Numbered from the stretch's first letter, positions 3,029 through 39,953 are shown. The stretch: 64,000 nucleotides of DNA from IMGVR_UViG_3300033145_003233:310001-374000; one strand, 5' to 3'. Translations and numbers: made by a program. Notes: generated by a model from the sequence alone, not told the origin.

Positions 3029-3997
3029 TCATATAATCTTTCTAAAATAATCTATTGTCATATCCATTCCTTCCTCAAGCTTAATATCCGGGAACCAATC
3101 AATTAGTTCAATAGCAAGCTCTATATCAGGATTCCTTCTTTGAGGATCATCTTCTGGCAAACTCCTATAAACTATCTTAGACTTACTATTCGTCATTAGA
3201 ATTATCTTATGAGCTAACTCCAGAATATTTATTTCATGAGGATTACCCAGATTAATAGGGCCAGTTATATCCTTCTTAGATTCCATTAGTTTTATCATTC
3301 CCCATACTGTATCATCCACATAACAAAAACTTCTAGTTTGTTTCCCCTCTCCATATATAGTGATATCCTCGTCCCTTAAAGATTGAACTATAAAATTACT
3401 CACTACTCTTCCATCATTAATAGACATATTAGATCCATATGTATTAAAAATTCTAGCCACTTTAATTTCTAAACCATATTGTCTATGATAATCAAAGAAC
3501 AAAGTCTCCGCACAACGCTTCCCCTCATCGTAACAAGATCTGATACCTATAGGATTAACATTCCCCCAATATGTTTCTATCTGAGGAGAGATAAGTGGAT
3601 CTCCATATATTTCGCTAGTAGATGCTTGTAAAACCTTAGCTCCTGTTTTTCTAGCAGATTCCAGAACATTAATAGTCCCCTGCACATTAGTCTTTATAGT
3701 TTTAACTGGATCATATTGATAATAAAAAGGAGAAGCAGGACAAGCAAGATTATATATCTCATCTGCCTCAATAATAAAAGGATCACATATATCGTGTCTT
3801 ATTATCTCAAAATTATCCAACCGGCATAAATGATCGATATTTCTTTTACTACCTGTAAAAAAATTATCCAGACAAATAACGTCATTTCCCTTTTCTAGCA
3901 AAATTTCGCAGAGGTGAGAACCTATAAACCCACCTCCCCCAGTCACTAAGCTTATTTTATTCATGGCCTTCATCGTCCTGTTTATCTCCCTCTCCAA
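3029..3997 (-). CDS. uxs: UDP-glucuronate decarboxylase (UDP-xylose synthase)
   Basis: [46 protein letters not shown]. True start probably near 3973. Confidence 0.92.
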
Positions 3998-4415
3998 ACA
4001 TACTTATTTTCCAATCCTTGAACTCTTCAGCCAAACAATCTGTTTTCCAGTCTAACCTCTCTTCTGGGCCAATCAAGCTACTAATAAAATTCTGAGATCT
4101 ATTTCTTATACCATTTAAACCATGAGTTAATTTTAAAAGATGTAAATCCTGATCATCTTTTCCCTGTCTAACTTTAGATTCATTATACCAAATATGAGCA
4201 TTTATCTGGGCCAATACTACAACCGCCCTTATTAAATCTCCAGAAATTTTAATGTCTTTTTCTTTTATAATATGATCTAAATCATTAACAATGTGTTTCA
4301 TCTCTTTACCATAAGTCTCTTTACGCTCAGTAATAAAAACTTCTTTTAATTGATGTATAGTTAATCTATCTATTAATTCCGAAAATGTAGGAAGAAATTT
4401 TCTAACCATCTCCAC
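3957..4415 (-). CDS. DUF6165/DUF4254-like helical protein, paralog 1
   Basis: [15 protein letters not shown]...LAQINAHIW...[10 protein letters not shown]; shared with 8059-8502 and 8484-8906. Confidence 0.6.
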
Positions 4416-4434: not shown

Positions 4435-5388
4435 TTATTTTTTTATTCTTTTATACCATTCTACTGTTTTTCTTATACCTTCTTCTAATGATGTTTGAGG
4501 ATTAAACCCCAACATTTTTATGGCCTTATCAATATTTATTGCTCTCCTGGGAATCATAGTGGGCTTAGATTTATCAAAAACGATATTAGCATTTTCATAT
4601 CCATCTATTTTCAGAATTACATCCAATGTTTTTTTAATAGTATGAGATTCACCAGATGCTAAATTAATAATATCAAAACCATCTACTTTCTCCATGGCCA
4701 GAATTAGTCCATCTACCATATCAGATATATAGGTTATATCTTTAGAATCAAGACCATCGCCCCAAACTCCTATAGGATCATGTCTCTCTACAACTCTTCT
4801 TATCAAAGCTGCTGTAGAATGTGATGTTTCCCATTCATAATCATCATATTCTCCGTACAAATTACCCACTCGTGCAACAATAGTAGTCATAGGATTTTTA
4901 ATTTTGGTAGAGTACATTTCGCACATAACTTCTGAAAACTTTTTCATAGATGCCACGCAAAAATATTTATGAAAAAATTCTCCATTATCATCCTCTTCCT
5001 TAAGGGGAAAATCTACCAATGGATAAACTGTAGTACTACTAACAAATAAAAACTTCTTCACTTTGGCATGATAAGCTGCTTCTAGCATTAAAGTGTTTAT
5101 CAGTACATTAGGAGTGACATGTGCTAATGGATTATATTCCATTACGGCTGCTCCAGACGTATTGGCGGCACACATAAAAACATAATCCTGATTTTTACAA
5201 ATCTTATTACAAAAATTCTTATCTGTCAAATCCCCCCATACAAAAGAAATATTTTCATTTTCGAATTGAGGACCTTTACGATGTAAAGTTGCCTTAACAT
5301 TAGCCCCTAGATCTACTAATCTTTTAATTAAATTTGTTCCTATAAAACCACTTCCACCAGTTACTAGTATCTTCTTACCTTTTAACAT
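4435..5388 (-). CDS. NAD-dependent epimerase/reductase (GDP-fucose-synthase-like extended SDR)
   Basis: TGGSGFIG, NLYGEYD, VWGDG; VASMK where YxxxK is expected. Confidence 0.85.
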   Translation of the reverse strand: MLKGKKILVTGGSGFIGTNLIKRLVDLGANVKATLHRKGPQFENENISFVWGDLTDKNFCNKICKNQDYVFMCAANTSGAAVMEYNPLAHVTPNVLINTLMLEAAYHAKVKKFLFVSSTTVYPLVDFPLKEEDDNGEFFHKYFCVASMKKFSEVMCEMYSTKIKNPMTTIVARVGNLYGEYDDYEWETSHSTAALIRRVVERHDPIGVWGDGLDSKDITYISDMVDGLILAMEKVDGFDIINLASGESHTIKKTLDVILKIDGYENANIVFDKSKPTMIPRRAINIDKAIKMLGFNPQTSLEEGIRKTVEWYKRIKK

Positions 5389-5400
5389 TTTAACTCCTTA

Positions 5401-5931
5401 TTAAGTTATTTCCCCTGTCATGTCTCTTTTAGACAAAATGGGATCAGATATAGGCCACCAAACATTAAAACGAGGATCATCATACTTTACTGTAAATTGA
5501 TTAGCCATACCCTTATAAATACAAGATTGCTTATAAAAGAACATTGCCTCTTCACTCATGACTACATATCCATTCCCATGTTTTGGAGGGATCAAGAGTT
5601 GTTTTTTATTTTCTCCGCTTAATACAAAAGGTTGATACTTTCCAAAATTAGAAGAATCTTTATCATAATTTAAAACATTAACATACATTCTGCCATATAA
5701 ACATGTTACTAATTTCCATGTCCTATCATCACCATGAAAGCCCCTCAAAACATGACGAGAAGACACGGCAATATTATCTTCTAAGAATTCTATTTCTTCA
5801 CCTACAGCTTCTTTTATAGCTTTTGTATAATCTATTTTATTATATAGCTCTTCATAGGTTCCCCTATGATCCTCAAAACTAGAACGATCAAATAAAAAAA
5901 CATTATCCATACTTGTAGTTTGTGCTATCAT
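5401..5931 (-). CDS. RmlC-like NDP-4-keto-6-deoxysugar 3,5-epimerase
   Basis: FEDHRG, VLRGFHGD, LLIPPKHGNG, WPISDPILSKRD. Confidence 0.9.
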   Translation of the reverse strand: MIAQTTSMDNVFLFDRSSFEDHRGTYEELYNKIDYTKAIKEAVGEEIEFLEDNIAVSSRHVLRGFHGDDRTWKLVTCLYGRMYVNVLNYDKDSSNFGKYQPFVLSGENKKQLLIPPKHGNGYVVMSEEAMFFYKQSCIYKGMANQFTVKYDDPRFNVWWPISDPILSKRDMTGEIT

Positions 5932-5933
5932 AT

Positions 5934-6929
5934 TTAAACAACCTCCTCTGCAAAATAATTCTTTCTACTTTTATATTCTTCAGAATTGTCAACAAACCAT
6001 TCCCAAGTTTTTCTCAAGCCTTCCTCTAATGATGTAGATGGTTCATAATGAATCAGTTTTTTAGCAAGAGATATATCCATTACTCTTTTAGGGAAACCTG
6101 AGGGTTTAGTAGTATCAAACTCATAATTAAAGTTTAAAAAACTTTTCAAGGTTTCTACTAATTCTCTAATAGTAACACCTCTCCCACTCCCTAGATTAAC
6201 AAATTTACTATCTGTTCCATAATATAAAGCTTGAATTATTCCTTCTGCGACATCTCTACTGTAAGCAAAATCTCTAATGGCAGAACCGTCGCCCCATATA
6301 ACAACAGGATCTTCCTTGTTATAAATTCTCTGCATAAGAGTAGGAATAACCATAGCGTTCTCAGGATCAAAGTTGTCTCCTGGTCCATAAATATTGGCTG
6401 GCCTAACAATAGCAAAATTCTTCAAACCATATTGAATGTCATAGGCTTCAATTTGTTTTTCTGCCATTCTCTTTGCCCATCCTGGAAACATATCCATAGG
6501 AGGACCATCGAGATTATTATCTTCTTTAAATACCTCTGCGCTTGAATATGCTCCCACAGAGCTAGTGTACACAATCTTTTTCACATTATTATAACGACAA
6601 GCCTCTAACACATTCGTATTCATCATAAGCAATGGAACAAAAAAGCTAGCCGGTTTTTCTTTTGTTACTTTTACAGACCCCTTAATCCCCGCGATATGAA
6701 AGACATAATCAACATCTTTAGTCCATTTCAAACATAAAACATAATCATTCAAATCACCTACTATATGATGAGCGCCTGGAACTCTTATGTTATGATCTAA
6801 AGACACAATAGAAACCTTAGCACCAGCATCTATCAATATCTTAACAACCTGTCGGCCTATTAAACCCGTTCCTCCGGTCACTAAACATTTCTTATCTCTA
6901 AAACTTTCTAAAATATCTTTCTCGATCAT
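5934..6929 (-). CDS. NAD-dependent epimerase/reductase (extended SDR)
   Basis: TGGTGLIG, RPANIYGPGDNF, IWGDGSAIRDF; PGWAK where YxxxK is expected. Confidence 0.85.
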   Translation of the reverse strand: MIEKDILESFRDKKCLVTGGTGLIGRQVVKILIDAGAKVSIVSLDHNIRVPGAHHIVGDLNDYVLCLKWTKDVDYVFHIAGIKGSVKVTKEKPASFFVPLLMMNTNVLEACRYNNVKKIVYTSSVGAYSSAEVFKEDNNLDGPPMDMFPGWAKRMAEKQIEAYDIQYGLKNFAIVRPANIYGPGDNFDPENAMVIPTLMQRIYNKEDPVVIWGDGSAIRDFAYSRDVAEGIIQALYYGTDSKFVNLGSGRGVTIRELVETLKSFLNFNYEFDTTKPSGFPKRVMDISLAKKLIHYEPSTSLEEGLRKTWEWFVDNSEEYKSRKNYFAEEVV

Positions 6930-6941
6930 ATTGATATCCTA

Positions 6942-8069
6942 CTATTTCTTTCTTACATTAACTAGAATCGGCTCTTTCCAATCAAAAGCTATAACCCATG
7001 CCCAATAACGAACTCTGCCCTCTATTAACTCATAGTCATAAAATCCTGTAGGGTCATCAATGGGAGAAACTTTAACTGGATTACATTTTTTATCTTCTTT
7101 TATTCTTTCAGACAACTCAACAGGACTAGGAGCAAATTTCATATCATTAGCTACAGCTTCTTCCACTGTCTTATATACTTTTCTATTACCTCTTCCTCCA
7201 TCATCAACTCTTATTTTTTCTGGATACACATATATTTTTTCTTTCTTAAAGACCCTGCCTATATCAGAAAAATCTTTTTCTGACATATCAAAATCAGAAG
7301 CTCTAGAATTATCTTCAATATGAGAGATATTAGTACTAGCAGGAATAGCCACTACTGAATCATTATGAGTTAACCAATTTAAAATAAGCTGAACAGAAGT
7401 TATGTCGTATTTGTCTATATATTTCTCAAAGATAATTTTTTCTTTATTATTGCCATAAAATTGTCCCTGATCTAAAGGGCTATAAGCTATCAGCGTGATA
7501 TCATTTTTGTCGCAATAAGAAAGAATTTCTTCCTCCACCCCTCTTTCAAAGAGATTATATTCAAGTTGCATAGAAACAATGTCATATTCAAAATTATTAC
7601 GAGCTTTTACAAACTCTTTAAAAGAAAAATTACTAACACCAACATGTTTAATTTTACCTTCCCTAATAAGCTTACCCATAGTCCACATAGTTTCTCCTAT
7701 GGGGATTTTATAATTCGGCCAGTGGATCTGATATAGATCTATACAATCTATACGTAATCTTTTTAAGCTTTCTTCTGCCGATTTTATAACATCATTAGAA
7801 GATAAATGCTCTGGTGACACTTTTGTAGCTATAACTATTTTATCCTTTTTATGTTGTGGAATACTTCCTATAAGTTCTTCAGCATGACCATTACCATAAG
7901 ATTCAGCAGTATCAAAAAAATTAATCCCACAATCTATGGCTTTTTCTATAGCTCTTTTACATTTTTCATCATTAGAAGTATCTGGCTCTAGATAACCGCC
8001 TATCCCCATTGACCCGAAACCAATAGAGGATATATTTATATCAGTATTGCCTAATTTTTTATATTTCAT
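6942..8069 (-). CDS. Aldo/keto reductase with C-terminal ParB/Srx-like domain
   Basis: GINFFDTAESYG, IDLYQIHWP, GVSNF, IAYSPL; tail YELIEGRVRYWAW. Confidence 0.85.
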   Translation of the reverse strand: MKYKKLGNTDINISSIGFGSMGIGGYLEPDTSNDEKCKRAIEKAIDCGINFFDTAESYGNGHAEELIGSIPQHKKDKIVIATKVSPEHLSSNDVIKSAEESLKRLRIDCIDLYQIHWPNYKIPIGETMWTMGKLIREGKIKHVGVSNFSFKEFVKARNNFEYDIVSMQLEYNLFERGVEEEILSYCDKNDITLIAYSPLDQGQFYGNNKEKIIFEKYIDKYDITSVQLILNWLTHNDSVVAIPASTNISHIEDNSRASDFDMSEKDFSDIGRVFKKEKIYVYPEKIRVDDGGRGNRKVYKTVEEAVANDMKFAPSPVELSERIKEDKKCNPVKVSPIDDPTGFYDYELIEGRVRYWAWVIAFDWKEPILVNVRKK

Positions 8070-8502
8070 TTTTTCTCACATTATTAATAATATCTAAATA
8101 CCATGCATCAGGAGATATAAATGTGGCCTTTGCCCCAGGAGTAGTAAGCTCCCCAACGCTACCCGAAATCATATTCTTGATAGAATTTTTTATACCATTA
8201 TTAAATTCCTGAGATAATATAAGCTTATCCGTATAGATATCATGATTATCTTCTAATTCCATTTCGTCCTTCAGGGACCATATATGCAGATTAGCTTGTG
8301 ACATCAAAATTATCTGTCTTATTAGCTTGGGTGTTAATTTTATATCTTTCTCATCTAACACGTAATCTATATCATGCGCTAACTTTTTTATTTCTCCCGA
8401 CCAATCAGCAGATAATAACATTTCTTTTATCTGACAAATAGATAACTTATCTATTAACTCAGCAAAAGTAAAATTAACTTTTTTTACAAGCTTATCGTCC
8501 AT
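8059..8502 (-). CDS. DUF6165/DUF4254-like helical protein, paralog 2
   Basis: FAELIDKLSICQIKE...MSQANLHIW. Confidence 0.6.
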   Translation of the reverse strand: MDDKLVKKVNFTFAELIDKLSICQIKEMLLSADWSGEIKKLAHDIDYVLDEKDIKLTPKLIRQIILMSQANLHIWSLKDEMELEDNHDIYTDKLILSQEFNNGIKNSIKNMISGSVGELTTPGAKATFISPDAWYLDIINNVRKNEI

Positions 8503-8906
8503 CCTTCTAACCCATCCACATTAATATTTGTTTTAATATCAACTGTATTCGACTCATCTACTTCCTGCATAATAATATTTTTAATTCTATTTCTAATACC
8601 ATTTAACTGATGAGACAATATGAGATGCTTCCCATAATCTTCACCAGAGCTTTTTTTCATTTTCTCTTTCTCTTTCCATATATAAAGATTAATTTGAGAC
8701 AAAATAATAATTAACCTAATAAATGTTGATGATGGTTTAATATCTCTCTTTTCTAAATCTACATTTATATCATGCATTAGATAACCAATCTCTTTTTCAA
8801 AATCATCTATCTCTGCAATATTATCAACCTCTTTAATTTGCTGTATAGACAAATTATCAATCAAATCTGAAAAAGACAAATGACATTCTCTTCTACCCAC
8901 TAACAC
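8484..8906 (-). CDS. DUF6165/DUF4254-like helical protein, paralog 3
   Basis: FSDLIDNLSIQQIKE...LSQINLYIW...LSHQLNGIRN. Confidence 0.6.
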   Translation of the reverse strand: MLVGRRECHLSFSDLIDNLSIQQIKEVDNIAEIDDFEKEIGYLMHDINVDLEKRDIKPSSTFIRLIIILSQINLYIWKEKEKMKKSSGEDYGKHLILSHQLNGIRNRIKNIIMQEVDESNTVDIKTNINVDGLEGWTISL

Positions 8907-9912
8907 ACTTCCCCACTTTTCTACTAGCTATGAATTTATTATTTTTATACCATTCCATAGTCTTTTTGATGCCTTCTTCCAAATTAACTCTAGGAACAAA
9001 AGAAAGCAAGGCCTTAGCTCTATTCGTATCAAGTATTCTTATCCTGTCACCAGAAGGCTTACTACTATCCCATTTCACTTCTATCTCTTCCGGCATCAAA
9101 TCGACAAGAGTTTCAACTAATTCTTTGATAGAAATTCCTCGTCCACTTCCTAAATTTATAGGAGTACAGGGAGGAGCATCTTTACATGCCATTAAAATTC
9201 CATCTACAACATCATCTACAAATATAAAATCTCTTTCAGCAGTCCCATCTCCTGCTATTTTCATGGGGTTCTCCCCATTTACCGCTCTACTAATTAAGGC
9301 CGGAATAACCTGTGCTGTTTCGGGATCGAAATCATCATAAGGACCATATACATTTGACAATCTTACAATCCTACCTGCGTCCCATCCATATTGAAGCATA
9401 TATGCTTCCGCTTGAGCTTCTCCGACTCTCTTAGCAATCCCGGCAAATCTATCATTAGCATGGGGAGGACCATCCCAAACTGAATCTTCGTGCCGTACTG
9501 AGAGATTGGGGTATTCACAAATACTACCAACAAACAAAAACCTTTTGACATTAGCTAATCTAGAAGCTTCCATCAAATTAGTATCAGCCATCAACAATGG
9601 AACGAAAGTACTAGCAACTTTCGATTCCCCTATTTGTGTACTCCCCTTTACACAGACTAAATTAAAAACATAATCGTAATCATGAACTAGGTCCTTACAA
9701 GCTTGGAAATCAGTTAAATCTACATATAAATTATAAACATCATATCCCTTAAAAACAGCCATAACCCTTTCCACTGAATCAATAGAAGCGACTGTTACAT
9801 ATGCCCCCATATCCATAAGCCGCTTAACTAATGGAGTTCCTATAGTTCCACTTCCTCCAGCCACTAATATATTTTTATCTTTATAAAATGAAATAAGATG
9901 TTCTGGAAACAT
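8893..9912 (-). CDS. NAD-dependent epimerase/reductase (extended SDR)
   Basis: AGGSGTIG, NVYGPYDDF, GDGTAERDF; AGIAK where YxxxK is expected. Confidence 0.85.
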   Translation of the reverse strand: MFPEHLISFYKDKNILVAGGSGTIGTPLVKRLMDMGAYVTVASIDSVERVMAVFKGYDVYNLYVDLTDFQACKDLVHDYDYVFNLVCVKGSTQIGESKVASTFVPLLMADTNLMEASRLANVKRFLFVGSICEYPNLSVRHEDSVWDGPPHANDRFAGIAKRVGEAQAEAYMLQYGWDAGRIVRLSNVYGPYDDFDPETAQVIPALISRAVNGENPMKIAGDGTAERDFIFVDDVVDGILMACKDAPPCTPINLGSGRGISIKELVETLVDLMPEEIEVKWDSSKPSGDRIRILDTNRAKALLSFVPRVNLEEGIKKTMEWYKNNKFIASRKVGKCVSG

Positions 9913-10636
9913 ATCTATATCTTTCTAATTTAATATTATTCAAACCCATCACCTCTCTTAATGCTACCGTCTCTCCTGGAGAATCCCGATCATTTAACTC
10001 GTCAAATCCCAACACGCTCCCCTTAACCAAATAAGGCTTTATAATTTCGAGACATTTTTTAGTAGGCTCATATAAATCAAAATCAAAATAAGCTAAAGAT
10101 ACAATAGTTTCTGGATGCGCCTTTAAATATTCAGCTAATTTCTTAGGGCCATCTCCCTTTAATATCTCAAATTTCTTTATATGAGAAATAGGATTGTCTT
10201 TTTCTTGTAAAGTTAAAATGTGTTCTAAATATTTTTCATAGTTGTTAGTTACATTATCTGCCCCATCAACCATCAAAGCAGATTTTCCATCTTTTTTATT
10301 AATATTTATAAAACCTTCAAAAGTATCAAAAGCTAATATCTTTCTATGTCTATTAAATGGCTCATATATACCTCTCAATGCAGCTAAAATAGATGCGTTT
10401 TGTCCCCACCGAGTACCAAATTCTATAATAATTCCATGCTTATCAATTATCTTGTTATATAAAAAATCAAAAAACAAAATACGAGAAAGATTTTTAGAAT
10501 TTAGAAATAACCCCAGATTAGATAAAATTTCATCATCAGGAAGAGGGTTCTCCTTAAAAGCAGTAAGCATTTCATTCCTAGCTTCTTCCTCTTTATCGCT
10601 ACTAAAATCTATATTTCCCAATTTTGTTTTACTCAT
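9881..10636 (-). CDS. TylF/MycF-family sugar O-methyltransferase
   Basis: IIEFGTRWG, FDTFEGF, AYFDFDLYEPT, GFDE. Confidence 0.85.
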   Translation of the reverse strand: MSKTKLGNIDFSSDKEEEARNEMLTAFKENPLPDDEILSNLGLFLNSKNLSRILFFDFLYNKIIDKHGIIIEFGTRWGQNASILAALRGIYEPFNRHRKILAFDTFEGFININKKDGKSALMVDGADNVTNNYEKYLEHILTLQEKDNPISHIKKFEILKGDGPKKLAEYLKAHPETIVSLAYFDFDLYEPTKKCLEIIKPYLVKGSVLGFDELNDRDSPGETVALREVMGLNNIKLERYRYVSRTSYFIL

Positions 10637-10637
10637 T

Positions 10638-11597
10638 TTATAATTTTTCCCAAACAGTTATAGAATAACCATCTCCCAATAGGCTTCCACATGGGACTCT
10701 CACCATTTTAATTATTTTAATTATTTTCTCTTTTTCCATCCTCATTAATTTTGTAAAGAAACCTTTCAAATAATTTCTATTATTTTCTAACTTACAAATA
10801 ATATAATCAGTCAAATTAGTGTCAGTATCATAAAACTCTAACATCGAATTGACATGTACATGTCTACTAAAAGGCTTGTCTAGTAAAAATTGTAAAAAAT
10901 CACCATATCTATTGCCTAGTTGTTCCAATGCTCCCAAAGTAAAGCTAACCCCGCCATCTTGAACTAAAAAATCATTATCAGGATAAAACATATCAAAAAT
11001 GCCACCATGAATATCATAATGAAATTTATCTCTGATAAGATTAATGATTGCTTGCGGTTGGCGGACCCAATCAACACCATAATAACTTTTTTCTGGAGCC
11101 ATCTCACAAAAAGATAACAAATTAGCACATGAGCCACAACCGAACTCGTAGATATTATCCTTGTCTTTTAAAAATGAATCAAAAACAAATGCTCTTATTA
11201 AATCTACAAAATTTTTCTCAAAATTATCATCCACTGATCTCACATAATCTCCAAACAAACGAATAGGAGAACCGCTCCTGAAATACTGAGGAGCCAAAGC
11301 AGCTTTGTCATACCCACTCTCAATAAAATTATCTTGTATTTCCCCCCAACCCTTCTCCCATTTTTCTTTTTTACCTTCACCAGATTTAGTAAAAATCTCT
11401 GCATCTATTCTTTTTATGAGTTCAAGTATTATTTTATCTCTTTCCCTCCTATCAATATGCCTATACCTAAAATCCCTATTATTAATTATATTAACACAGG
11501 ATAATGGCATCTCATTTTGATCAATATCAAAAATCATAGAGAAATCTTTAACGGTAAGATTGTGAATGTTTTCTCCCACTTTATTATTTTTCCACAA
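10638..11597 (-). CDS. Class I SAM-dependent methyltransferase
   Basis: IYEFGCGS, YYGVDW, GALEQLG. Confidence 0.75.
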   Translation of the reverse strand: MWKNNKVGENIHNLTVKDFSMIFDIDQNEMPLSCVNIINNRDFRYRHIDRRERDKIILELIKRIDAEIFTKSGEGKKEKWEKGWGEIQDNFIESGYDKAALAPQYFRSGSPIRLFGDYVRSVDDNFEKNFVDLIRAFVFDSFLKDKDNIYEFGCGSCANLLSFCEMAPEKSYYGVDWVRQPQAIINLIRDKFHYDIHGGIFDMFYPDNDFLVQDGGVSFTLGALEQLGNRYGDFLQFLLDKPFSRHVHVNSMLEFYDTDTNLTDYIICKLENNRNYLKGFFTKLMRMEKEKIIKIIKMVRVPCGSLLGDGYSITVWEKL

Positions 11598-12543
11598 AAG
11601 ATAAAATAGATTTAATTATACTATCTTTATCGAGTCCATATTCAGAACGAATCCAATTTCTGTCCCCGTATTTTTTACAAAATTCATCTGGCAAAGATAT
11701 TTTCTTTAATGGCTTATATATATTATTCTCAACCATAAGCTCACTTATTATACTTCCCAATCCACCGATACAAGAATGCTCCTCCACCACAACTACTCTT
11801 TTAGAACCTGATATTATTCTAGCTGCTTCTTTATCATTAAATGGTTTAATCCTAAATACATCTCTATAAGTAGTGAATACTCCTTCTTTATGAGTTAAAT
11901 ATTCTGCTGCTTCTATTACATCATACATGTTAGTCCCAGTAGAAAAAATTACAACATCTGGTTTCCCATAAGGACCACATATTCCAAGACTAAACGGAAC
12001 TGAGTCCTTATTTGGTTCTGGAAAAATAAAGTTATCATATTCTGGCAAGGGAGAATAATCACCCTTATCTAATCTAATATATGTTGGACCATCATTCTCA
12101 TATGCCTTCTGAGCAACATAAGAATTCATAACTGGACCTGAAGGACTATATATAGTTAAATTAGGAAGAGTTCTCATGATCGCGATATCATTAAGAGAAT
12201 GATGAGTAGGCCCATCATTACTAAACGTAAGACCAGCCCCGATACCAATAATTGTAACAGGTAAATTCATGCAACATAAGTCAATTTTTATCTGCTCAAA
12301 ACACCTTTCTGTTACAAATGGAGTGATAGTATAAACACAAACTTTTTTGCCAGCTTTGGCTAACCCAGCCGCTACACTTATCATATTCTGTTCAGCTACG
12401 CCAACATTGATAAATCTACGCCCCAGTTTTTCTTTAAACTTAGATAAACTAAATGCCCACATATCAGCAGTAAGAAAATAAAAATTATCATCATCTTTAA
12501 CTAAATCATATAATCTGTCAAAAAATGCGTCTCTAAGGTCCAT
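11584..12543 (-). CDS. Transketolase, C-terminal subunit
   Basis: INVGVAEQNM, EQIKID, GPTHH, GPTYIRL, VEEH...GGLGS. Confidence 0.9.
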   Translation of the reverse strand: MDLRDAFFDRLYDLVKDDDNFYFLTADMWAFSLSKFKEKLGRRFINVGVAEQNMISVAAGLAKAGKKVCVYTITPFVTERCFEQIKIDLCCMNLPVTIIGIGAGLTFSNDGPTHHSLNDIAIMRTLPNLTIYSPSGPVMNSYVAQKAYENDGPTYIRLDKGDYSPLPEYDNFIFPEPNKDSVPFSLGICGPYGKPDVVIFSTGTNMYDVIEAAEYLTHKEGVFTTYRDVFRIKPFNDKEAARIISGSKRVVVVEEHSCIGGLGSIISELMVENNIYKPLKKISLPDEFCKKYGDRNWIRSEYGLDKDSIIKSILSFVEK

Positions 12544-13312
12544 TTATTTCCCTCCTAGCAATTTCTAATTGTTCATCATTAGGAACTCCGTGATGCCATT
12601 TGGGAACATTCTCCATATAAGATATCCCCTTTCCCTTAACAGTATTAGCTATAATAACCAATGGTTGATATGGATTAACTTTCTTACCCTTCTTAATATA
12701 TTCAATTATCTGTTTTACATCATGGCCATTAATATTACAAACTGCCCATCCACACTGACGAAGCCGACCTCCCAAATATTGTAATGAACAAGAATCCTTC
12801 ATAAAATCAGTGGCGCAAATATTATTCTTATCTATAATTAAAATTATATTATTTAAACTGTGTTGAGCAGCAAATAAAATAGATTCCCAAACAGATCCCT
12901 CATTACATTCTCCATCCCCCATCAGAACATATATGTCCCCTTTTTCTTCATCATTTATTCTAGCCAATGCCATACCACAAGCGACACCAAGACCATGACC
13001 TAAGGACCCAGTATCAAATTCAACTCCCTTAATATTTATATCTGGATGGCCTCCCAATGGATTCCCATTTAAATAACATTCTTCATAATCCTTATCATTT
13101 ATATATCCCAAATCATGCAAAATAGGATAGAACGCCATAGAAACATGTCCTTTACTTAAAATAAATTTATCATCTTCCTCAAGAATTCCACCATAATAAA
13201 GGGCCACCAATATTTCCACACATGAAAGAGCACCTCCGACATGTCCTTTCTTAGATCTATATAATATATCTAAGATCTCATTTCTTAACCATTTACATTT
13301 ATCTTCCAGCAT
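12533..13312 (-). CDS. Transketolase, N-terminal (TPP-binding) subunit
   Basis: GHVGGALS, LSKGH, TGSLGHG, GDGECNEG...N TPP motif. Confidence 0.92.
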   Translation of the reverse strand: MLEDKCKWLRNEILDILYRSKKGHVGGALSCVEILVALYYGGILEEDDKFILSKGHVSMAFYPILHDLGYINDKDYEECYLNGNPLGGHPDINIKGVEFDTGSLGHGLGVACGMALARINDEEKGDIYVLMGDGECNEGSVWESILFAAQHSLNNIILIIDKNNICATDFMKDSCSLQYLGGRLRQCGWAVCNINGHDVKQIIEYIKKGKKVNPYQPLVIIANTVKGKGISYMENVPKWHHGVPNDEQLEIARREINGP

Positions 13313-14358
13313 TAAAATGGACCTTTAAATTTATTTTCATAATTATAAAATTCTTCACCTTCCACATTAATAGAAGATAAACCGAACATCTTTTCAACTG
13401 TTCTAATAATATCAACAGAATCAGGATAAAACTCATTTTCTAGATGTCTAGCCGTAGGACAAGGAGTGTGAGCGAAACCCATTCTTTCTATAGGGCAATC
13501 TAATAACCGGAAACAACTACTATATATTGTCGCTGCCAGTTCCGCACCAAAACCGCAGTGAACCCAGTCATAATCTGCTATTATACATTTACGAGTTTTG
13601 CTAACAGACTCAACCATTGGTTTCAAATCTACAGACGATATACACCTAGCATCTATTATCTCAACAGATATCCCGTACTTCTCTAAAACTTGAGCGGCTC
13701 TCAATGCCTCGACATTCATCCACGAGGTAGCTATAATAGTAACATCCTCTCCGTCCCTTATCTTGCTGGCCTTATCTAGGGGAACTCTAAAACTCTTTTC
13801 TTCTACTTCTCCCTCCTGGAAATATAACCACCTATGTTCCATAATCATAACCGGATTATCATCACGAATAGCTGCTATCATCATTCCCTTTACATCTCTT
13901 ACAGTTGTGGGCATCACAACTTTTAAACCTGGGATATGAGCGAAAATAGATTGCATAGTTTTAGTATGTTGACATCCCTGCCCCCAACCCCTACCTATAA
14001 TATTCCTTATTACGATAGGAATTTTCAATTTACCATCAGACATATATCTAAAACTTGATATTTGATTAATTAATTGATTCATAGCTAGAAGAGAAAAGTC
14101 AACTCTCATATGAACAAGGATAGGTCTCAACCCATTAATTGCTGCTCCAAGAGCAAACCCTGTTAGACTATCTTCAGATAAAGGAGTATCAAAACACCTA
14201 TCTTTTCCAAAAGTTTCTTGCAATCTTTCAGTTGTGCCAAAAATCTTCTTACAATCAGGAACGCCTATGCCATAAATAAAGACATTCTTATCCCTTTCCA
14301 TTTCTTGATAAATAGCCTCGTTAATTGCTTCTTTATATGTTATTTTTTTATCTCTCAT
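13312..14358 (-). CDS. 2-oxoacid/acetoin dehydrogenase E1 beta-like subunit
   Basis: FDTPLSE, GLRP, HIPGLKVVMP, EHRWLY. Confidence 0.9.
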   Translation of the reverse strand: MRDKKITYKEAINEAIYQEMERDKNVFIYGIGVPDCKKIFGTTERLQETFGKDRCFDTPLSEDSLTGFALGAAINGLRPILVHMRVDFSLLAMNQLINQISSFRYMSDGKLKIPIVIRNIIGRGWGQGCQHTKTMQSIFAHIPGLKVVMPTTVRDVKGMMIAAIRDDNPVMIMEHRWLYFQEGEVEEKSFRVPLDKASKIRDGEDVTIIATSWMNVEALRAAQVLEKYGISVEIIDARCISSVDLKPMVESVSKTRKCIIADYDWVHCGFGAELAATIYSSCFRLLDCPIERMGFAHTPCPTARHLENEFYPDSVDIIRTVEKMFGLSSINVEGEEFYNYENKFKGPF

Positions 14359-14360
14359 AA

Positions 14361-16187
14361 TTACTCAAATAAAACATTATTATAAAGTTCACTAACATCT
14401 GAAGATTCTGATACCTTAGCAAATTCCAAACTTCTATATATTTGCTCATCTATTTCTTTATTTACTTTTTCTATGTCCAAATCCGGATGATCTTTAAGCA
14501 ACAAATCTCTTGAATATTCTAAAGGATCTTCTACCTTATTCAACTCATCTCTACTACGATACCCAGCTTCCCAATCATCGCATACTCCAACATGTTCCAG
14601 ACATCTAAGATAATTAAATGACATGAAATGAGGTCGATTAGTTGCCCTTATATCTTCTACTATTTTTTTTGTATCATGATAAATATGATCAACTTTTGTA
14701 GTTTTGTAATTATGCACAGTTAACCTGAAATTATCCATAAAGTCACATATATCATCATAACCATGTCTTTCTTTTTTTGAAGTACACACAGCTAAATCAT
14801 TATCTTCATACACAAATAGAACTGGAAGTTGCCATAAAGATGCCATATTTATACTTTCCCAAAAATTCCCCTCATCAACAGCCCCGTCCCCAAAGAACAC
14901 AACCACTACTCTACCATTTTTTTTCATTTTATTAGCAAACGCTGCCCCAGTCGCTACAGAAATATTGCTAGCAACGATAGCAGATGATGACATATACCCC
15001 TCTTCAGGACAAGCTATATGCATAGAACCAGCTTTGCCTCTAGCCTCTCCAGTTTTTTTCCCATACATTTCTGCAAAAAAGCCATGAGTATCTCTTGTTT
15101 TAGCCAGATATGGAGCATGAGTGCGATATGTAGTAAAAATTTGATCGTCATCATTCAAAGCTCCTATAATTCCAACTGATATAGCTTCTTCTCCTCTCGA
15201 CATATGCATAGGAGTTTTCATTTCATCATCAAAATAATTATCTATTATTACACTCTCTGCTTTTCTAATTAAATAAATCTTTTTATACAACTCCAAACTC
15301 AAGTCCCACTTTTCACTTGTCCTGCCCTGAGAAATAGTAGTCAACTTCTTATCATTAACATATGTTGCAACTGGATCAGATCTCTTAGACCTTGCCACTA
15401 CAATGCATCTCTCCACCTGTCTTTTTGTTGCCCTAATAATTCTGTCAATTCCATATTTTTCTGAAGAATTTAATCTCCATTCACACCACAAAGAAGAAAA
15501 TAAAGCTGCATCTCGAGCTGCTAGAGATGGACTAATAGAACCATAACCTTCATTATTCTCTACTGTTCTAACTTCTTTTACATAAATAGATTGCCCGCCA
15601 GCTTCATAAAGACGCATAGCAAAATCTTCAGCATAATAACTACAAATAAAATTCTTATCAATTCCACCTAACTTGAAATATGCTTCCTTATGGAACATTA
15701 AACCAGCCCCATTAGGGAGAAAAGGACAATAATAACCCCTGCTTAAATGTTTACCACTACGCTTACCAAAAAAGAACCTACTAGGACTAGCTCTTTTACA
15801 TATCACAAATTTATCTATCTTAGGCTTATAAATATAACGACCCAATGCACCTGCTGAAAAATTATATTCATTATTACCTAATTCTATCAAATGATCATAT
15901 AAGCAATCTAATGCATTCTTATTGGGATAACTCAAATCATCACCACTATTAAAAATAAAATCTCCTCTGGCCTCCAACATTCCTATATGAAAACACTGAG
16001 CTGGTTTTACTTCGGCATAAATATATCTAAAATTTTCAGGTAGTTCAAAATCCGGTCTTATATGTCCAATAAAAATAACTTCAAATGGTATATAATTCTC
16101 TTGTAAGCCATCATAATACTCTTTCCAAAAATCTATTTTAATAGCTGGAGAAACAACACTTACTATTGGTTTTATATAAGAACACAT
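14361..16187 (-). CDS. In-frame fusion of a GT2-like glycosyltransferase (N-terminal ~295 aa) and an E1 alpha TPP subunit (C-terminal)
   Basis: N-terminal part aligns with 41560-42417; C-terminal part has PMHMSRGEEA, GSMH and FGDGAVDEG...DN. Confidence 0.8.
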   Translation of the reverse strand: MCSYIKPIVSVVSPAIKIDFWKEYYDGLQENYIPFEVIFIGHIRPDFELPENFRYIYAEVKPAQCFHIGMLEARGDFIFNSGDDLSYPNKNALDCLYDHLIELGNNEYNFSAGALGRYIYKPKIDKFVICKRASPSRFFFGKRSGKHLSRGYYCPFLPNGAGLMFHKEAYFKLGGIDKNFICSYYAEDFAMRLYEAGGQSIYVKEVRTVENNEGYGSISPSLAARDAALFSSLWCEWRLNSSEKYGIDRIIRATKRQVERCIVVARSKRSDPVATYVNDKKLTTISQGRTSEKWDLSLELYKKIYLIRKAESVIIDNYFDDEMKTPMHMSRGEEAISVGIIGALNDDDQIFTTYRTHAPYLAKTRDTHGFFAEMYGKKTGEARGKAGSMHIACPEEGYMSSSAIVASNISVATGAAFANKMKKNGRVVVVFFGDGAVDEGNFWESINMASLWQLPVLFVYEDNDLAVCTSKKERHGYDDICDFMDNFRLTVHNYKTTKVDHIYHDTKKIVEDIRATNRPHFMSFNYLRCLEHVGVCDDWEAGYRSRDELNKVEDPLEYSRDLLLKDHPDLDIEKVNKEIDEQIYRSLEFAKVSESSDVSELYNNVLFE

Positions 16188-16192
16188 AAAAA

Positions 16193-16909
16193 TTACCCTT
16201 TACCATTTTTTAAACAAGATAAAACTTCATTTATTTCCAAATTGGCTCTATAGGCTGAAACCTTATCTATTTTATAAAGTTTTTTAACCAACTGAATCTT
16301 ATCATTATCAACAATAGAAGTATTAATATATACCACTTCACGCCATTTAGGACTTTTTTTATTAATAATCCTTGCTGGCACAAAAGAACAAGCTGACAAA
16401 AAATCATGCACAACATTTAAAAGAGGGATACCCTCATAACATCTTTTAAGCCACATTTCTAAATGAATAACAATAATCTGGTTCATATAATTCTTTACAT
16501 TCTTCAAGATATCATATTCAGAACCTTGAGCATCTATCTTTAAAACATCAATACCGTGACCACTTTGTTCTATAATCTTAGCAAGGCTCTTACATTTGAC
16601 AGGCTTAGAATCAACGACTTCCATACAATCAAATTCTATACGATCATCTTTATAATATTTCATATCGGGAACAAAAAGAGAACTATTTTGCCCATCTTTA
16701 GTTATATAAAGAATCTTCTCTTTCCCATCTGAAATAGCACAATCATAATAGAAATATTTATCATCTATTACCTTATTGCTTTCAAATCTAGGATCCAAAC
16801 CGATATACTTTTCTATGTATTTGCGATATCTTTTTTTATCAAAAGGAAAAACAAATCCACCAAAAGCACCTACATCAAAATATATTAACTTACTTATTTC
16901 TTGCGTAAT
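16193..16909 (-). CDS. FkbM-family methyltransferase (ORF track starts at 16798; frame extends to a likely non-canonical start)
   Basis: LKIDAQGSEY; the in-frame upstream extension encodes motif I YFDVGAFGG. Confidence 0.75.
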   Translation of the reverse strand: MTQEISKLIYFDVGAFGGFVFPFDKKRYRKYIEKYIGLDPRFESNKVIDDKYFYYDCAISDGKEKILYITKDGQNSSLFVPDMKYYKDDRIEFDCMEVVDSKPVKCKSLAKIIEQSGHGIDVLKIDAQGSEYDILKNVKNYMNQIIVIHLEMWLKRCYEGIPLLNVVHDFLSACSFVPARIINKKSPKWREVVYINTSIVDNDKIQLVKKLYKIDKVSAYRANLEINEVLSCLKNGKG

Positions 16910-17870
16910 ATTCTCTCCAGAAATTTAAAGTATCTTTTAATGTAATATCAAAATCAATGGTAGGCTCCCATCCAGTTTCTTTTTTAAATTTATCAACACA
17001 TGGAATTTGCAATGTCACATCAGATGGCCTTAGTAAAGACTTATCAACTATAACCTTCATATTTTTCGTAGTTGACATCCCTATTAATTTATCCAACATC
17101 TCTCTAATAGTCATTGTGAAATTACCACCTATGTTATATACTTCTCCATATTTACACTCATTAACCATCATCCAGTATGCCCTCACTGTGTCCCTAACAT
17201 CAGCAAATGTCCTAACGCTATCCAAATTACCCACTTTAATAATAGGCTCTTGCAATCCAGCTTCTATCTTTGCTATCTGTTTAGCAAAAGCCGCAACTAC
17301 AAAAACATCTCCTCTTTTAGGCCCAGTATGTGTAAACATTCTTGACCTAATAGTTTTTATTCCGTAAGAAATCCAATATTGTAACCCAAGCATATCCTCC
17401 CCAACCTTAGAAACGGCGTAAGGAGAAGCAGGCTTAAGAGGACAATCTTCTTCTATAGGAATATCTTTTTCATCAACCTGTCCGTACACTTCTGAGGACG
17501 AACAAATATGAACAATAGGATCATAGTCTTCCTCTTCTTTTATAATCTTAATCGCCTCTAATAAATTACATGTCCCTATCACATTTGAATCCAATGTGGC
17601 GGCAGGAACATCAAAACTATATGGTACGTAAGACTGAGCAGCCAAATGAAAAATATATTTTGGCATAACCTTCTTAATTATACGATATAAAGAAGAAAAA
17701 TCTGTTAAATCTCCATGATGAAAAGTTACAGAATCCAGCAAATGCAAAATATTTTCTTTTGGAGATCTCCATCTAGTTAACCCATGAACCTCTACATCTG
17801 TTTCTGCTAACAAATAATCTGCTAAATGACTTCCTACAAAACCAGTTACTCCAGTAATAAATGCTTTCAT
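16890..17870 (-). CDS. gmd: GDP-mannose 4,6-dehydratase family
   Basis: TGVTGFVGSHL, HLAAQSYV..SF, SSSEVYG, SPYAVSK, GNLDSVR, LRPSDV. Confidence 0.88.
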   Translation of the reverse strand: MKAFITGVTGFVGSHLADYLLAETDVEVHGLTRWRSPKENILHLLDSVTFHHGDLTDFSSLYRIIKKVMPKYIFHLAAQSYVPYSFDVPAATLDSNVIGTCNLLEAIKIIKEEEDYDPIVHICSSSEVYGQVDEKDIPIEEDCPLKPASPYAVSKVGEDMLGLQYWISYGIKTIRSRMFTHTGPKRGDVFVVAAFAKQIAKIEAGLQEPIIKVGNLDSVRTFADVRDTVRAYWMMVNECKYGEVYNIGGNFTMTIREMLDKLIGMSTTKNMKVIVDKSLLRPSDVTLQIPCVDKFKKETGWEPTIDFDITLKDTLNFWREYYARNK

Positions 17871-19248: not shown

Positions 19249-19896
19249 CTATAACAATTCAGATAGATTGTGAATTATCGTAATATTTTTATCTGCAAAA
19301 TAACTTCTCCAGTCATACATATTCGTGTACCCGCTAACAAAAATAAAATCCATGTTATTCTCAACCGATACTTCATAATCATATTTCGCATCACCCACAA
19401 AGATAGCTGGTTCTAAATAGCCCTCCTCTCTTATAGATGAAATTATTTCATTCTTAGTTCTTGGGCTACCATAAACTCCCTTAAAATTTTTATGCAACCC
19501 CCTAAGACGTAAAACATTATCCACTTCTTCTTGCTTCCCTCCAGAAACAACAAATATATCCTTCCCACTACCTATAACTCTCGCCAGAAACTTCAATGCC
19601 CCCTGAGTTTCCCTACAACCAGTTAATAAACGAGCACATTCTTTACCAAATTCATCTACTAACATTTGCACTGTTTTGTCATTAATATCTTCTTTTAAAA
19701 CTTCAAAAACAAATTTATTTATTTTTTCATACCTTGTAACCCCTCCCATCTCCTTATGTAGCATTACAAACTTGCGAGCTGCACACTCTCCGTATAGCAT
19801 ACCTATTCTATGAAAAGCTTTAGTTTTAACCCAATTCGAATCAATCAAAACTCCATCGCAATCAAAAAACCATGTATTATATTTTGTTAAGTCCAT
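19249..19896 (-). CDS. HAD-family phosphatase
   Basis: FDCDGV, VSG, GSPRTK, FVGDAKYD. Confidence 0.9.
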   Translation of the reverse strand: MDLTKYNTWFFDCDGVLIDSNWVKTKAFHRIGMLYGECAARKFVMLHKEMGGVTRYEKINKFVFEVLKEDINDKTVQMLVDEFGKECARLLTGCRETQGALKFLARVIGSGKDIFVVSGGKQEEVDNVLRLRGLHKNFKGVYGSPRTKNEIISSIREEGYLEPAIFVGDAKYDYEVSVENNMDFIFVSGYTNMYDWRSYFADKNITIIHNLSELL

Positions 19897-39940: not shown

Positions 39941-39953
39941 TAAAGGAGATCTC

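Follow-up and report, generated by a model that had tools for sequence, protein, structure and literature searches.

Two pairs of thiamine-dependent (ThDP) enzymes normally known from central metabolism lie next to each other in a 13-kb run of genes carried by a 548-kb bacteriophage, and the question raised by this locus is what they do there. We examined these genes at positions 4435-17870, all on the minus strand, of the 64,000-nucleotide window analyzed here (the whole stretch IMGVR_UViG_3300033145_003233:310001-374000). Our data support a role in sugar chemistry and not in central metabolism, the most likely product being an undescribed carbon-branched GDP-sugar, a reading to which we assign a probability of about 0.62. 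A first-pass annotation made from the sequence alone had listed 15 genes in this interval and had proposed a self-contained module building an unusual branched or higher-carbon O-methylated sugar on GDP-4-keto-6-deoxymannose. The observation was confirmed, since all 15 genes are present in the listed order, whereas the interpretation was supported only in part: the assignment of both ThDP pairs to a nucleotide-sugar pathway and the absence of E2 and E3 held, but the claim of self-containment did not, and the starting sugar may be a different one. That the DNA belongs to a megaphage, and that the cassette is widespread in bacteria, could not have been seen from the sequence alone.

The genome is that of a phage-G-like megaphage of 547,943 bp, with portal, tail fibre and RNR genes, 29 clustered tRNAs, a portal closest to that of Bacillus phage G, and an IMG/VR virus record with a CheckV completeness of 100. 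The 15 genes are the last-transcribed part of a roughly 79-kb glycosylation island, in which glycosyltransferases (GTs), NeuB, CMP-transferases and Maf-like genes are spread across the window and upstream, and in which no polytopic membrane protein was found. We considered whether the region could be cellular DNA wrongly joined to a phage contig. However, GC content and strand skew are uniform across the contig, a homing endonuclease and inteins lie inside the island, and the same cassette is found on four other viral contigs, in one of them next to terminase and portal genes. We regard this possibility, together with the auxiliary metabolism hypothesis discussed below, as very unlikely.

ORF prediction combined with Pfam and NCBIfam profile searches and precomputed Pfam annotations showed that the genes overlap or abut (–41 to +19 nt), apart from one gap of 91 nt. 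The first enzyme (16890-17870) is a GDP-sugar 4,6-dehydratase of the DdahA/WcbK/Rmd-like type (GDP_Man_Dehyd, PF16363, 270 bits). It had been labelled gmd, but it scores 191 bits against the 415-bit cut-off of TIGR01472, and its best solved relative is 7US5, a GDP-D-glycero-D-manno-heptose 4,6-dehydratase (296 bits), ahead of Rmd 2PK3 (211 bits), true GMDs (about 150) and RmlB (about 105). It is followed by an FkbM-family methyltransferase (16193-16798; PF05050, E 1.6e-9; TIGR01444, 37 bits) and by a 608-aa protein (14361-16187) in which a GT2-like (GT-A) domain (residues 1 to about 296) is fused to a ThDP-binding E1-alpha (residues 297-608; E1_dh at 307-585, GDG-X27-ND motif at residue 433). 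Pfam did not confirm the GT2 label, but the ESM Atlas supports it (score 0.97, TM 0.65-0.68) and the DD and GGxDxNF motifs are kept; a paralog lies at 41560-42417. The identical ORF sits on an NCBI MAG contig, the full-length protein is a singleton, and its relatives have a stand-alone E1-alpha. E1-beta (13312-14358; Transket_pyr and Transketolase_C, PF02779 and PF02780), separated from E1-alpha by 2 nt, scores 313 bits against PRK09212, just under the cut-off of 321, and is 53-74% identical to the E1-beta of cassettes in other genomes. Next come the N (PP-domain) subunit (12533-13312; Transketolase_N, PF00456) and the C subunit (11584-12543; Transket_pyr and Transketolase_C) of a split transketolase-like (TK-like) enzyme. 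The motifs of the ThDP enzymes are intact and their genes are translationally coupled.

The remaining genes encode methyltransferase-like proteins, reductases, an epimerase and small proteins of unknown function. The 319-aa product of 10638-11597 has no Pfam hit, but ESM Atlas features place it with class I SAM methyltransferase clusters (0.98-0.99), and it is conserved at this position in bacterial cassettes. The protein encoded at 9881-10636 is TylF/Methyltransf_24-like, with a weak match (PF13578, E 8.9e-4), a paralog at 57931-58596 that hits TylF weakly, and orthologs 53-67% identical in other cassettes. It is followed by an extended SDR (8893-9912; PF01370), a GDP-fucose-synthase-like ketoreductase/epimerase whose best PDB hits are GDP-L-fucose synthase and GDP-mannose 3,5-epimerase. 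Two paralogous predicted four-helix-bundle proteins of unknown function (8484-8906 and 8059-8502) have no Pfam hit. An alignment for the former shows invariant polar residues, and the latter, modelled by AF2 with a pLDDT of 86, has no PDB fold match, is fused to methyltransferases in AFDB and lies near DUF6165/DUF4254. A third paralog by blastp (3957-4415), just outside the annotated interval, is probably part of the module, being the DUF copy most often matched in bacterial cassettes. Then come an aldo/keto reductase (AKR; 6942-8069; PF00248, 226 bits) conserved in phage and bacterial cassettes, a GDP-fucose-synthase-like extended SDR (5934-6929; PF01370; best PDB hit GDP-fucose synthetase 1E6U; orthologs 60-78% identical), an RmlC-fold GDP-4-keto-sugar 3- or 3,5-epimerase (5401-5931; dTDP_sugar_isom, PF00908) and a last extended SDR (4435-5388; PF01370), a probable terminal reductase/epimerase with PDB hits to GDP-mannose 3,5-epimerase and GDP-fucose synthase, whose 46-63% identical orthologs end the cassette elsewhere. 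The best PDB hits of the RmlC-like enzyme are Campylobacter jejuni GDP-D-glycero-4-keto-D-lyxo-heptose 3-/3,5-epimerases (8DCL/8DCO, about 110 bits) against 89 bits for dTDP RmlC. As the dehydratase, the epimerase and the three SDRs are all closest to GDP-sugar enzymes, the nucleotide is very probably GDP. The module is not self-contained, because PF00483, SIS_2 and GHMP kinase are absent from the genome: with no sugar-1-phosphate nucleotidyltransferase or precursor genes, the host must supply the GDP-sugar.

The first-pass annotation had named in advance an outcome that would overturn its reading, namely that the E1 and transketolase pairs group with housekeeping enzymes, and trees did not show this. 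The phage TK-C falls in a clade with an SH-aLRT support of 100 whose 42 rows comprise 38 bacterial rows from loci with other sugar-module genes, 3 phage rows and 1 row on a short contig, while 24 of the 25 TK-only rows, including canonical TKs, lie outside it, as do the housekeeping TK copies of the same genomes. The phage E1-alpha falls in another SH-aLRT-100 clade of 14 rows, all from sugar loci or phages, and the housekeeping E1-alphas of the same genomes lie outside it, although some cassette-linked E1-alphas (labelled L044, L053, L064 and L118) fall nearer to housekeeping E1s. In addition, searches of the whole 548-kb genome with PF00198, PF00364 and PF02852 revealed no E2, lipoyl domain or E3, and three small CPR genomes that carry the cassette have the cassette E1 as their only E1 and no E2 at all. 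Phages can carry pentose-phosphate genes, and the Pfam and NCBIfam names here are PDH E1 and transketolase, which could suggest auxiliary metabolic genes boosting host pyruvate oxidation and the pentose-phosphate pathway. However, all curated cut-offs are missed (TIGR03182, 242 against 394 bits; PRK05899, 204 against 488), and the enzymes have neither the partners nor the phylogenetic position expected of a 2-oxoacid dehydrogenase E1 or a housekeeping transketolase.

The same collinear cassette occurs in Omnitrophota, Levybacteria, Acidobacteriota, Planctomycetota, Chloroflexota and Pseudomonadota genomes. The order dehydratase-E1a-E1b-TKN-TKC-SDR-DUF-DUF-MT-AKR-SDR-...-RmlC-SDR was found in an Omnitrophota MAG and in about 15 further GTDB species from at least 8 phyla, and the cassette is also present in phage contigs of 351, 215, 56 and 46 kb. 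The arrangement is not due to chance, because the same gene order recurs in unrelated genomes. The nearest E1-alpha relatives (54% and 48% identical) lie between a 4,6-dehydratase and SDR/RmlC genes, together with GmhA, GmhB and an NTP-transferase, and the E1 gene directly follows or overlaps the 4,6-dehydratase gene in relatives. A different hypothesis is that the two ThDP enzymes make a small non-sugar acyloin or deoxy-ketose unit, as in acetoin or DXP chemistry, later attached to a conventional 6-deoxy sugar. In its favor, TK-C scores about equally against DXS and TK models, acetoin:DCPIP oxidoreductase belongs to the same E1 superfamily (PMC12247030), and automatic source names call the relatives acetoin dehydrogenase. 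We consider it unlikely, since TK-N scores far higher against TK than against DXS (204 versus 59 bits), the cassette has no acyl-, CoA- or phospho-transfer gene to attach such a unit, and the E1 gene is closely tied to the dehydratase gene.

The active site of the TK-like enzyme bears on a further alternative. TK-N (166 bits to split TK 6YAK) keeps the equivalents of His26, His66, His100, GDG, Asn185 and His261. TK-C (140 bits to 6YAJ) keeps those of Arg358, Glu411, Asp469, His473 and Arg520, but the His461 equivalent is Gly and the Ser385 region is altered, so that the full set of phosphate-binding residues of canonical transketolase (EC 2.2.1.1; Arg358, Ser385, His461, Arg520) is not present. 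The change of His461 to Gly is found throughout the subfamily, the Asp469 equivalent is lost in two phage copies, and a GxGxG...DGPTHH motif is shared by the 120 best homologs. Because the two phosphate-binding Arg residues, like the TK catalytic histidines, are invariant, the enzyme could still act on sugar phosphates. It is thus possible that only the E1 pair branches the GDP-keto sugar and that the TK-like pair works upstream, making sedoheptulose-7-phosphate or an unusual longer ketose phosphate that feeds the GmhA/HddA/GmhB/HddC route to the GDP-heptose precursor. Consistent with this, an HddA-like kinase is present in about 27 of the 80 bacterial loci, GmhA, GmhB and an NTP-transferase are often adjacent, the kinase, GmhA and GmhB sitting next to the TK pair in many loci, and the 56-kb phage has GmhA and a GHMP kinase right beside the TK pair. 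However, this megaphage, its 351-kb relative and the 215-kb phage keep the TK pair but have no GmhA, kinase or nucleotidyltransferase. Cassette-bearing bacteria also keep other TK_N-family genes, even in CPR genomes of 0.8-1.1 Mb, one of them scoring higher than the cassette's copy in four of the five genomes checked, and the TK genes sit inside the run of late-step genes, between E1-beta and the SDR/AKR genes, not with the precursor genes. We view this as the strongest of the alternatives but still unlikely.

A model based on these data would begin with a GDP-sugar supplied by the host, either GDP-D-glycero-D-manno-heptose or GDP-mannose, that the DdahA/Rmd-like dehydratase converts to a GDP-4-keto-6-deoxy sugar, followed by epimerization at C3 and/or C5 by the RmlC-like enzyme. 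The E1-alpha/beta pair, working without E2/E3, would then decarboxylate pyruvate and add the resulting two-carbon unit to the sugar ketone, giving a tertiary alcohol with an acetyl branch, as the alpha-KADH2 enzymes of antibiotic sugars do, and the split TK-like pair, with TK catalytic histidines but an altered acceptor pocket, would add a second two-carbon ketol unit, either to the same intermediate or to the new side-chain ketone. The three SDRs and the AKR would reduce the ketones, up to three methyltransferases would methylate the product, and the GT2-like domain fused to E1-alpha would bind or transfer the finished GDP-sugar. The phage setting and the identity of the genes as a copy of a conserved cassette are demonstrated by our analysis, and the first two steps rest on family membership demonstrated here, whereas everything from the E1 reaction onward, including the order of steps, the donors, the carbon attacked and the product, is inferred, no member of the cassette having been assayed by us or others. 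The product would be an undescribed C-branched, higher-carbon, methylated 6-deoxy sugar added to a cytoplasmic acceptor; no acceptor was identified and no expression data could be found, but virion proteins are the most likely one. In a bolder version of this model, which is tentative and in our view somewhat less likely than not, the phage encodes a complete late pathway for an undescribed doubly ThDP-extended, C-branched, methylated higher-carbon GDP-sugar of about C10-C11 with which it glycosylates its own virion, the split TK-like enzyme being a true keto-sugar carboligase in series with the E1 carboligase. This would be the first such pair anywhere and the first ThDP sugar-branching system in a virus, and the cassette would then mark an unrecognized class of surface sugars in CPR bacteria, Omnitrophota, Planctomycetota, Acidobacteriota and marine SAR11/Prochlorococcus cells.

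Among known systems, YerE, proposed by the first-pass annotation as an analogue, is the wrong one. YerE-like ThDP lyases (yersiniose, erwiniose, caryophyllose) also produce C-branched, sometimes higher-carbon sugars of surface glycans by addition to an NDP-4-keto sugar, but YerE is a single-chain enzyme of the decarboxylase superfamily acting on CDP-sugars, and no such ORF is present among the 15 genes. Viruses that carry their own glycosyltransferases and sugar-nucleotide modifying enzymes include mycobacteriophages with virion glycosylation and phages with DNA glycosylation (Freeman 2023 and Pyle 2024, as cited in PMC12619734). Mimivirus, with its fibril glycans, is another such virus. ThDP-dependent sugar branching was not found in any record of the GenBank phage collection, where no TK-C relative exceeds 33% identity, and the island described here is much larger in scale, about 79 kb with at least 10 GTs and 3 NeuB. 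The C. jejuni GDP-6-deoxy-heptose pathway (4,6-dehydratase, C3/C5 epimerases, C4 reductases) provides the best solved relatives of the dehydratase and the epimerase, and related cassettes carry GmhA, HddA-like, GmhB and HddC-like genes, but the phage lacks these supply genes, which leaves the substrate undecided, and the Campylobacter pathway has no ThDP enzymes, AKR or DUF proteins.

The two ThDP pairs each have a precedent as documented or proposed keto-sugar branching enzymes (PMC12247030, PMC4802897). Split-gene transketolases, with separate N and C subunit genes in a sugar-modifying cluster, are proposed to transfer hydroxyacetyl to a ketone acceptor in miharamycin and amipurimycin biosynthesis, ketol transfer to a sugar ketone having been shown for no member of the family; the 13 predicted cases are all from Streptomycetes and none has been characterized (PMC12247030). 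The subfamily described here is widespread, as at least 585 loci in GTDB species representatives matched the scan and 42 of the 81 best fall in the sugar-locus clade, and it is paired with an E1 system and present in viruses. Sequence relationships to AviB1, Plm8, KbDH and the Streptomyces TK enzymes were not examined, nor was pyruvate-dependent C2 transfer assayed. The alpha-KADH2 enzymes of actinomycete antibiotics, AviB1/AviB2 (avilamycin), Plm8/Plm9 (paulomycin), AlmDI/DII (aldgamycin) and KbDH-alpha/beta (kibdelomycin), share with the phage locus an adjacent E1-alpha and E1-beta gene pair without E2/E3, placed in a pathway that starts with an NDP-hexose 4,6-dehydratase and includes a 3,5-epimerase, ketoreductases and O-methyltransferases, and they add a pyruvate-derived C2 unit to C3 or C4 of a keto sugar (PMC12247030, PMC4802897). 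These known cases act on dTDP-deoxysugars for secondary metabolites in Actinomycetota. In the cassette the enzymes are of GDP type, the setting is a glycoconjugate island, the carriers are a phage and many non-actinomycete phyla, the alpha subunit of the phage is fused to a GT2-like domain, and a second ThDP enzyme always accompanies the pair.

The DNA examined here is coded almost entirely on the minus strand, and between 4435 and 17870 it contains 15 ORFs in exactly the order listed by the first-pass annotation, whose observation is therefore confirmed. Pfam and NCBIfam profile searches confirm most of the assignments: a GDP_Man_Dehyd-type SDR (16890-17870), an FkbM methyltransferase, a 608-aa protein whose C-terminal half is an E1-alpha, an E1-beta, Transketolase_N and Transket_pyr/Transketolase_C subunits, a weak Methyltransf_24 protein, three further extended SDRs, an aldo/keto reductase (AKR) and an RmlC-fold protein. 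Three labels that Pfam could not confirm are supported by other evidence. The first 296 residues of the 608-aa protein resemble GT2/GT-A proteins in ESM Atlas features and predicted structure and keep the DD and GGxDxNF motifs, the 319-aa protein resembles class I SAM methyltransferases, and the two DUF proteins (8059-8502 and 8484-8906, minus strand) are paralogs of each other and of a third copy at 3957-4415 (minus strand). The genes overlap or abut (–41 to +19 nt, with one 91-nt gap), and both ThDP motifs are intact. In a promoter and terminator scan, counts were no higher than in shuffled sequence, which gives no information on transcription units, and a search for sequencing runs listed none for the TK/E1 stretch, so that there is no expression or habitat evidence. 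A 7-kb contig in a deposited MAG (GCA_054384775.1, JBQSEL010000068.1) is 100% identical at protein level to window ~11.8-18.6 kb, and represents either phage DNA binned into a cellular MAG or the same sample assembled twice.

The window is part of a single 547,943-bp contig (G000:C1:310001-374000, that is, positions 310,001-374,000) with 33.6% GC, in which 502 of 646 long ORFs lie on one strand and the GC skew is steady. Twenty-nine tRNA genes cluster within 12 kb, at 171-183 kb, and a 5139-aa ORF lies at genome 486468-501887. PHROGs profiles detected a portal, a tail fibre, a ribonucleotide reductase and a tRNA nucleotidyltransferase. The best GenBank relative of the portal is Bacillus phage G, at 31.7% identity and E 6e-71, and the record is an IMG/VR virus with CheckV completeness 100. 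This is therefore a phage-G-like megaphage, read in the standard code.

Precomputed Pfam hits for the genes of the contig, together with profile scans upstream, show that the module ends a glycan island of about 79 kb, which runs from about window 2195 to about 80.8 kb upstream of the window start (window 2195-64000 and the adjoining locus L008, window +64 to +81 kb). The island holds at least 10 glycosyltransferases, three NeuB synthases, at least five CMP-sugar synthetases (CTP_transf_3), at least five MptE/Maf-like proteins, about a dozen methyltransferases, two sulfotransferase-like proteins and an HpcH aldolase/2-hydroxyacid dehydrogenase/HAD set. A sub-module of HAD phosphatase, HpcH/HpaI aldolase, 2-hydroxyacid dehydrogenase and CMP-transferase at window 19249-22376 (minus strand), partly repeated at 37297-38977 (minus strand), suggests a CMP-activated 3-deoxy-ulosonic or related acid that is distinct from the NeuB products. 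The gene at window 3029-3997 (minus strand), directly downstream of the GDP module, is not part of it but is a UDP-glucuronate decarboxylase (UDP-xylose synthase; 379 bits to human UXS1), representing a separate UDP-sugar branch. The island is interrupted by a GIY-YIG/MerR homing-endonuclease-like ORF and two ORFs with intein-splicing/Hint domains (window 32851-33660 and 63176-63910, and L008:2423-3115, all minus strand), and two plus-strand genes (39026-40553) break the minus-strand run. A metallo-beta-lactamase-fold protein resembling the anti-Pycsar nuclease Apyc1, a peptide deformylase and a RecA lie upstream of the window (L008:9948-10778, L008:2976-3614 and, in the upstream locus L009, 7337-8593, all minus strand). 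None of the proteins of the island has more than one predicted membrane helix, so there is no flippase, polymerase or initiating phosphoglycosyl transferase, and glycosylation must take place on a cytoplasmic acceptor. The acceptor (virion proteins or DNA) was not identified; DNA glycosylation is not excluded but is less likely given the Maf-like protein glycosyltransferases and the CMP-sugar genes.

The best solved relative of the dehydratase is the Campylobacter jejuni GDP-D-glycero-D-manno-heptose 4,6-dehydratase (296 bits), followed by the GDP-rhamnose enzyme Rmd (211 bits), whereas true GDP-mannose dehydratases score about 150 and dTDP-glucose dehydratases about 105. The RmlC-fold protein is closest to the C. 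jejuni GDP-4-keto-heptose 3- and 3,5-epimerases, and the three SDRs are closest to GDP-fucose synthase and GDP-mannose 3,5-epimerase. The pathway is therefore GDP-based. The phage has no NTP_transferase, SIS or GHMP-kinase gene and must draw GDP-heptose or GDP-mannose from the host. The first-pass interpretation, a self-contained module in which the two ThDP enzyme pairs build an unusual sugar on GDP-4-keto-6-deoxymannose rather than serving central metabolism, is thus supported only in part, since the module is not self-contained and its precursor may be either of these two GDP-sugars.

That annotation had specified in advance that its reading would fall if the E1 and transketolase pairs grouped with housekeeping enzymes and did not act on NDP-keto sugars; several lines of evidence show that they do not group with housekeeping enzymes, which led us to reject a role in central metabolism. 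The whole phage lacks E2, lipoyl and E3 domains, and all curated family cut-offs are missed. The nearest E1-alpha relatives in a collection of 5.8 billion proteins (54% and 48% identity) lie directly after a 4,6-dehydratase gene and are followed by an E1-beta, SDRs and an RmlC-like gene, next to GmhA, GmhB-like and NTP-transferase genes. An Omnitrophota MAG carries dehydratase, E1-alpha, E1-beta, TK-N, TK-C, SDR, two small DUF proteins, a 310-aa protein, AKR, SDR, radical SAM, AKR, RmlC and SDR, which is almost the phage order. A scan of GTDB species representatives with a TK-C alignment returned at least 585 loci, and among the best 80 the full collinear cassette is present in Levybacteria, Yanofskybacteria, Omnitrophota, Latescibacterota, Chloroflexota, Acidobacteriota, Planctomycetota, Myxococcota, Acidimicrobiia and Pseudomonadota, with an HddA-like kinase in about 27 of these loci. 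In a TK-C tree, an SH-aLRT-100 clade of 42 rows holds 38 bacterial rows from loci with other sugar-module genes, three phage rows and one row from a short contig, while 24 of the 25 rows without sugar genes, including canonical transketolases, lie outside it. In an E1-alpha tree, the phage enzyme lies in an SH-aLRT-100 clade of 14 rows, all from sugar loci or phages, and housekeeping E1-alphas fetched from two of the same genomes lie outside it. The five cassette-bearing genomes we checked each have other TK_N-family genes, and in four of them one scores higher than the cassette's copy. In the three small ones (0.8-1.2 Mb; two Levybacteria genomes and a 1.2-Mb gammaproteobacterial MAG), the cassette E1 is the only E1 and no E2 was found. 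Even so, the two Levybacteria genomes keep a second, higher-scoring transketolase, whereas the other TK_N-family hit of the gammaproteobacterial MAG scores lower than the cassette's. These reduced genomes invest in this sugar pathway.

We compared the transketolase-like enzyme with the solved split transketolase of Carboxydothermus hydrogenoformans. The N subunit keeps the equivalents of His26, His66, His100, the GDG motif, Asn185 and His261. The C subunit keeps the equivalents of Arg358, Glu411, Asp469, His473 and Arg520, but has Gly in place of His461 and a rearranged Ser385 region. The motif GxGxG...DGPTHH is shared by all 120 best homologs and by the phage copies, and two small-phage copies also lose the Asp469 equivalent. 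The cofactor chemistry and donor handling therefore look like transketolase, while the acceptor pocket differs from it.

TK-N relatives lie on four further IMG/VR contigs. A 351-kb contig carries almost the same module in the same order, at 53-78% identity, with a stand-alone E1-alpha, and also shares the upstream CMP-transferase, methyltransferase and dehydrogenase genes. A 215-kb phage has a GT2-like homolog, SDR, TK-N, TK-C, SDRs, RmlC and the dehydratase next to DNA ligase, and a 56-kb contig with terminase and portal genes has SDR, GmhA, a GHMP kinase, RmlC, TK-N, TK-C, SDR, AKR, a methyltransferase and GT4. A portal search in the related phage contigs gave only a weak match in the 215-kb phage, and the 351-kb contig, which is 73% complete, lacks the portal, so kinship of the phages rests on island synteny alone. 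The full-length GT2::E1-alpha protein found nothing in IMG/VR and has no full-length relative among the 5.8 billion proteins; the fusion is specific to this phage. The GT2-like domain stands as a separate gene directly upstream of the TK pair in the 215-kb phage, and twice in a Candidatus Nealsonbacteria locus in which the unit [MT319-like, GT2-like, TK-N, TK-C] is tandemly duplicated, which links it functionally to the ThDP enzymes. No record in the GenBank phage collection has a TK-C relative above 33% identity.

The three paralogous DUF proteins belong to a family that is conserved in bacterial cassettes and is modeled confidently as a four-helix bundle (pLDDT 86), with invariant Asp, Lys, Glu, Arg, Asn and Trp residues. 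A fold search matched no solved structure, and in AlphaFold DB the same fold was found only in fusions, to methyltransferases, an FkbM protein and a GT9 fragment. It could be an accessory or substrate-binding subunit of the methyltransferases, but this is a guess, and no function is assigned to the family.

The favored explanation, which is inferred, is that the host GDP-sugar is dehydrated to a 4-keto-6-deoxy intermediate and epimerized, extended twice by C2 units, by the E1 pair and by the TK-like pair, reduced by the three SDRs and the AKR, methylated, and handed on by the GT2-like domain. What our analysis demonstrates is the family memberships and intact cofactor motifs, the absence of E2/E3, the GDP type of the partner enzymes, and the conserved synteny and separate clades; the order of steps, the carbons attacked and the donor of the TK step are not specified by these data. 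The main alternative is that the TK-like pair acts on sugar phosphates upstream of GDP-heptose, and the invariant Arg pair and the frequent HddA/GmhA neighbors favor this alternative. Three points argue against it: the TK pair is kept in phages without any precursor gene, cassette-bearing bacteria keep other TK_N-family genes (higher-scoring than the cassette's in four of five genomes), and the acceptor pocket is altered.

The phage spends about 14% of a 548-kb genome on cytoplasmic glycan synthesis, including three nonulosonic-acid synthases and this branching module, which is comparable to giant eukaryotic viruses and suggests that virion glycosylation in megaphages can be largely independent of the host, apart from the basic sugar nucleotides. 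ThDP-dependent branching of NDP-keto sugars is itself a known class of chemistry, found in LPS sugars (YerE type) and in actinomycete antibiotics, and these enzyme classes have been surveyed by genome mining (Krug et al., 2024, Angew. Chem.). In the literature we could search, we found no description of an E1 + TK + GDP-heptose cassette, and the combination of an E1 pair with a TK-like pair in one conserved GDP-sugar cassette, its wide distribution outside Actinomycetota, its presence in viruses and the GT2::E1-alpha fusion are likewise not described. E1-alpha/beta pairs (alpha-KADH2) add a pyruvate-derived C2 unit to C3 or C4 of NDP-keto sugars in aldgamycin, kosinostatin, kibdelomycin, paulomycin and avilamycin biosynthesis, whereas split transketolases are proposed, but not proven, to transfer hydroxyacetyl to a keto sugar in miharamycin and amipurimycin, all 13 predicted cases being from Streptomycetes and none having been assayed (PMC12247030; PMC4802897). 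Compared with these systems, our study shows a distinct TK-like subfamily permanently coupled to an E1 pair in a conserved GDP-sugar cassette spread over many phyla and several phages, which provides soluble, compact and testable candidates for the unproven TK reaction and points to a class of surface sugars that has not been described.
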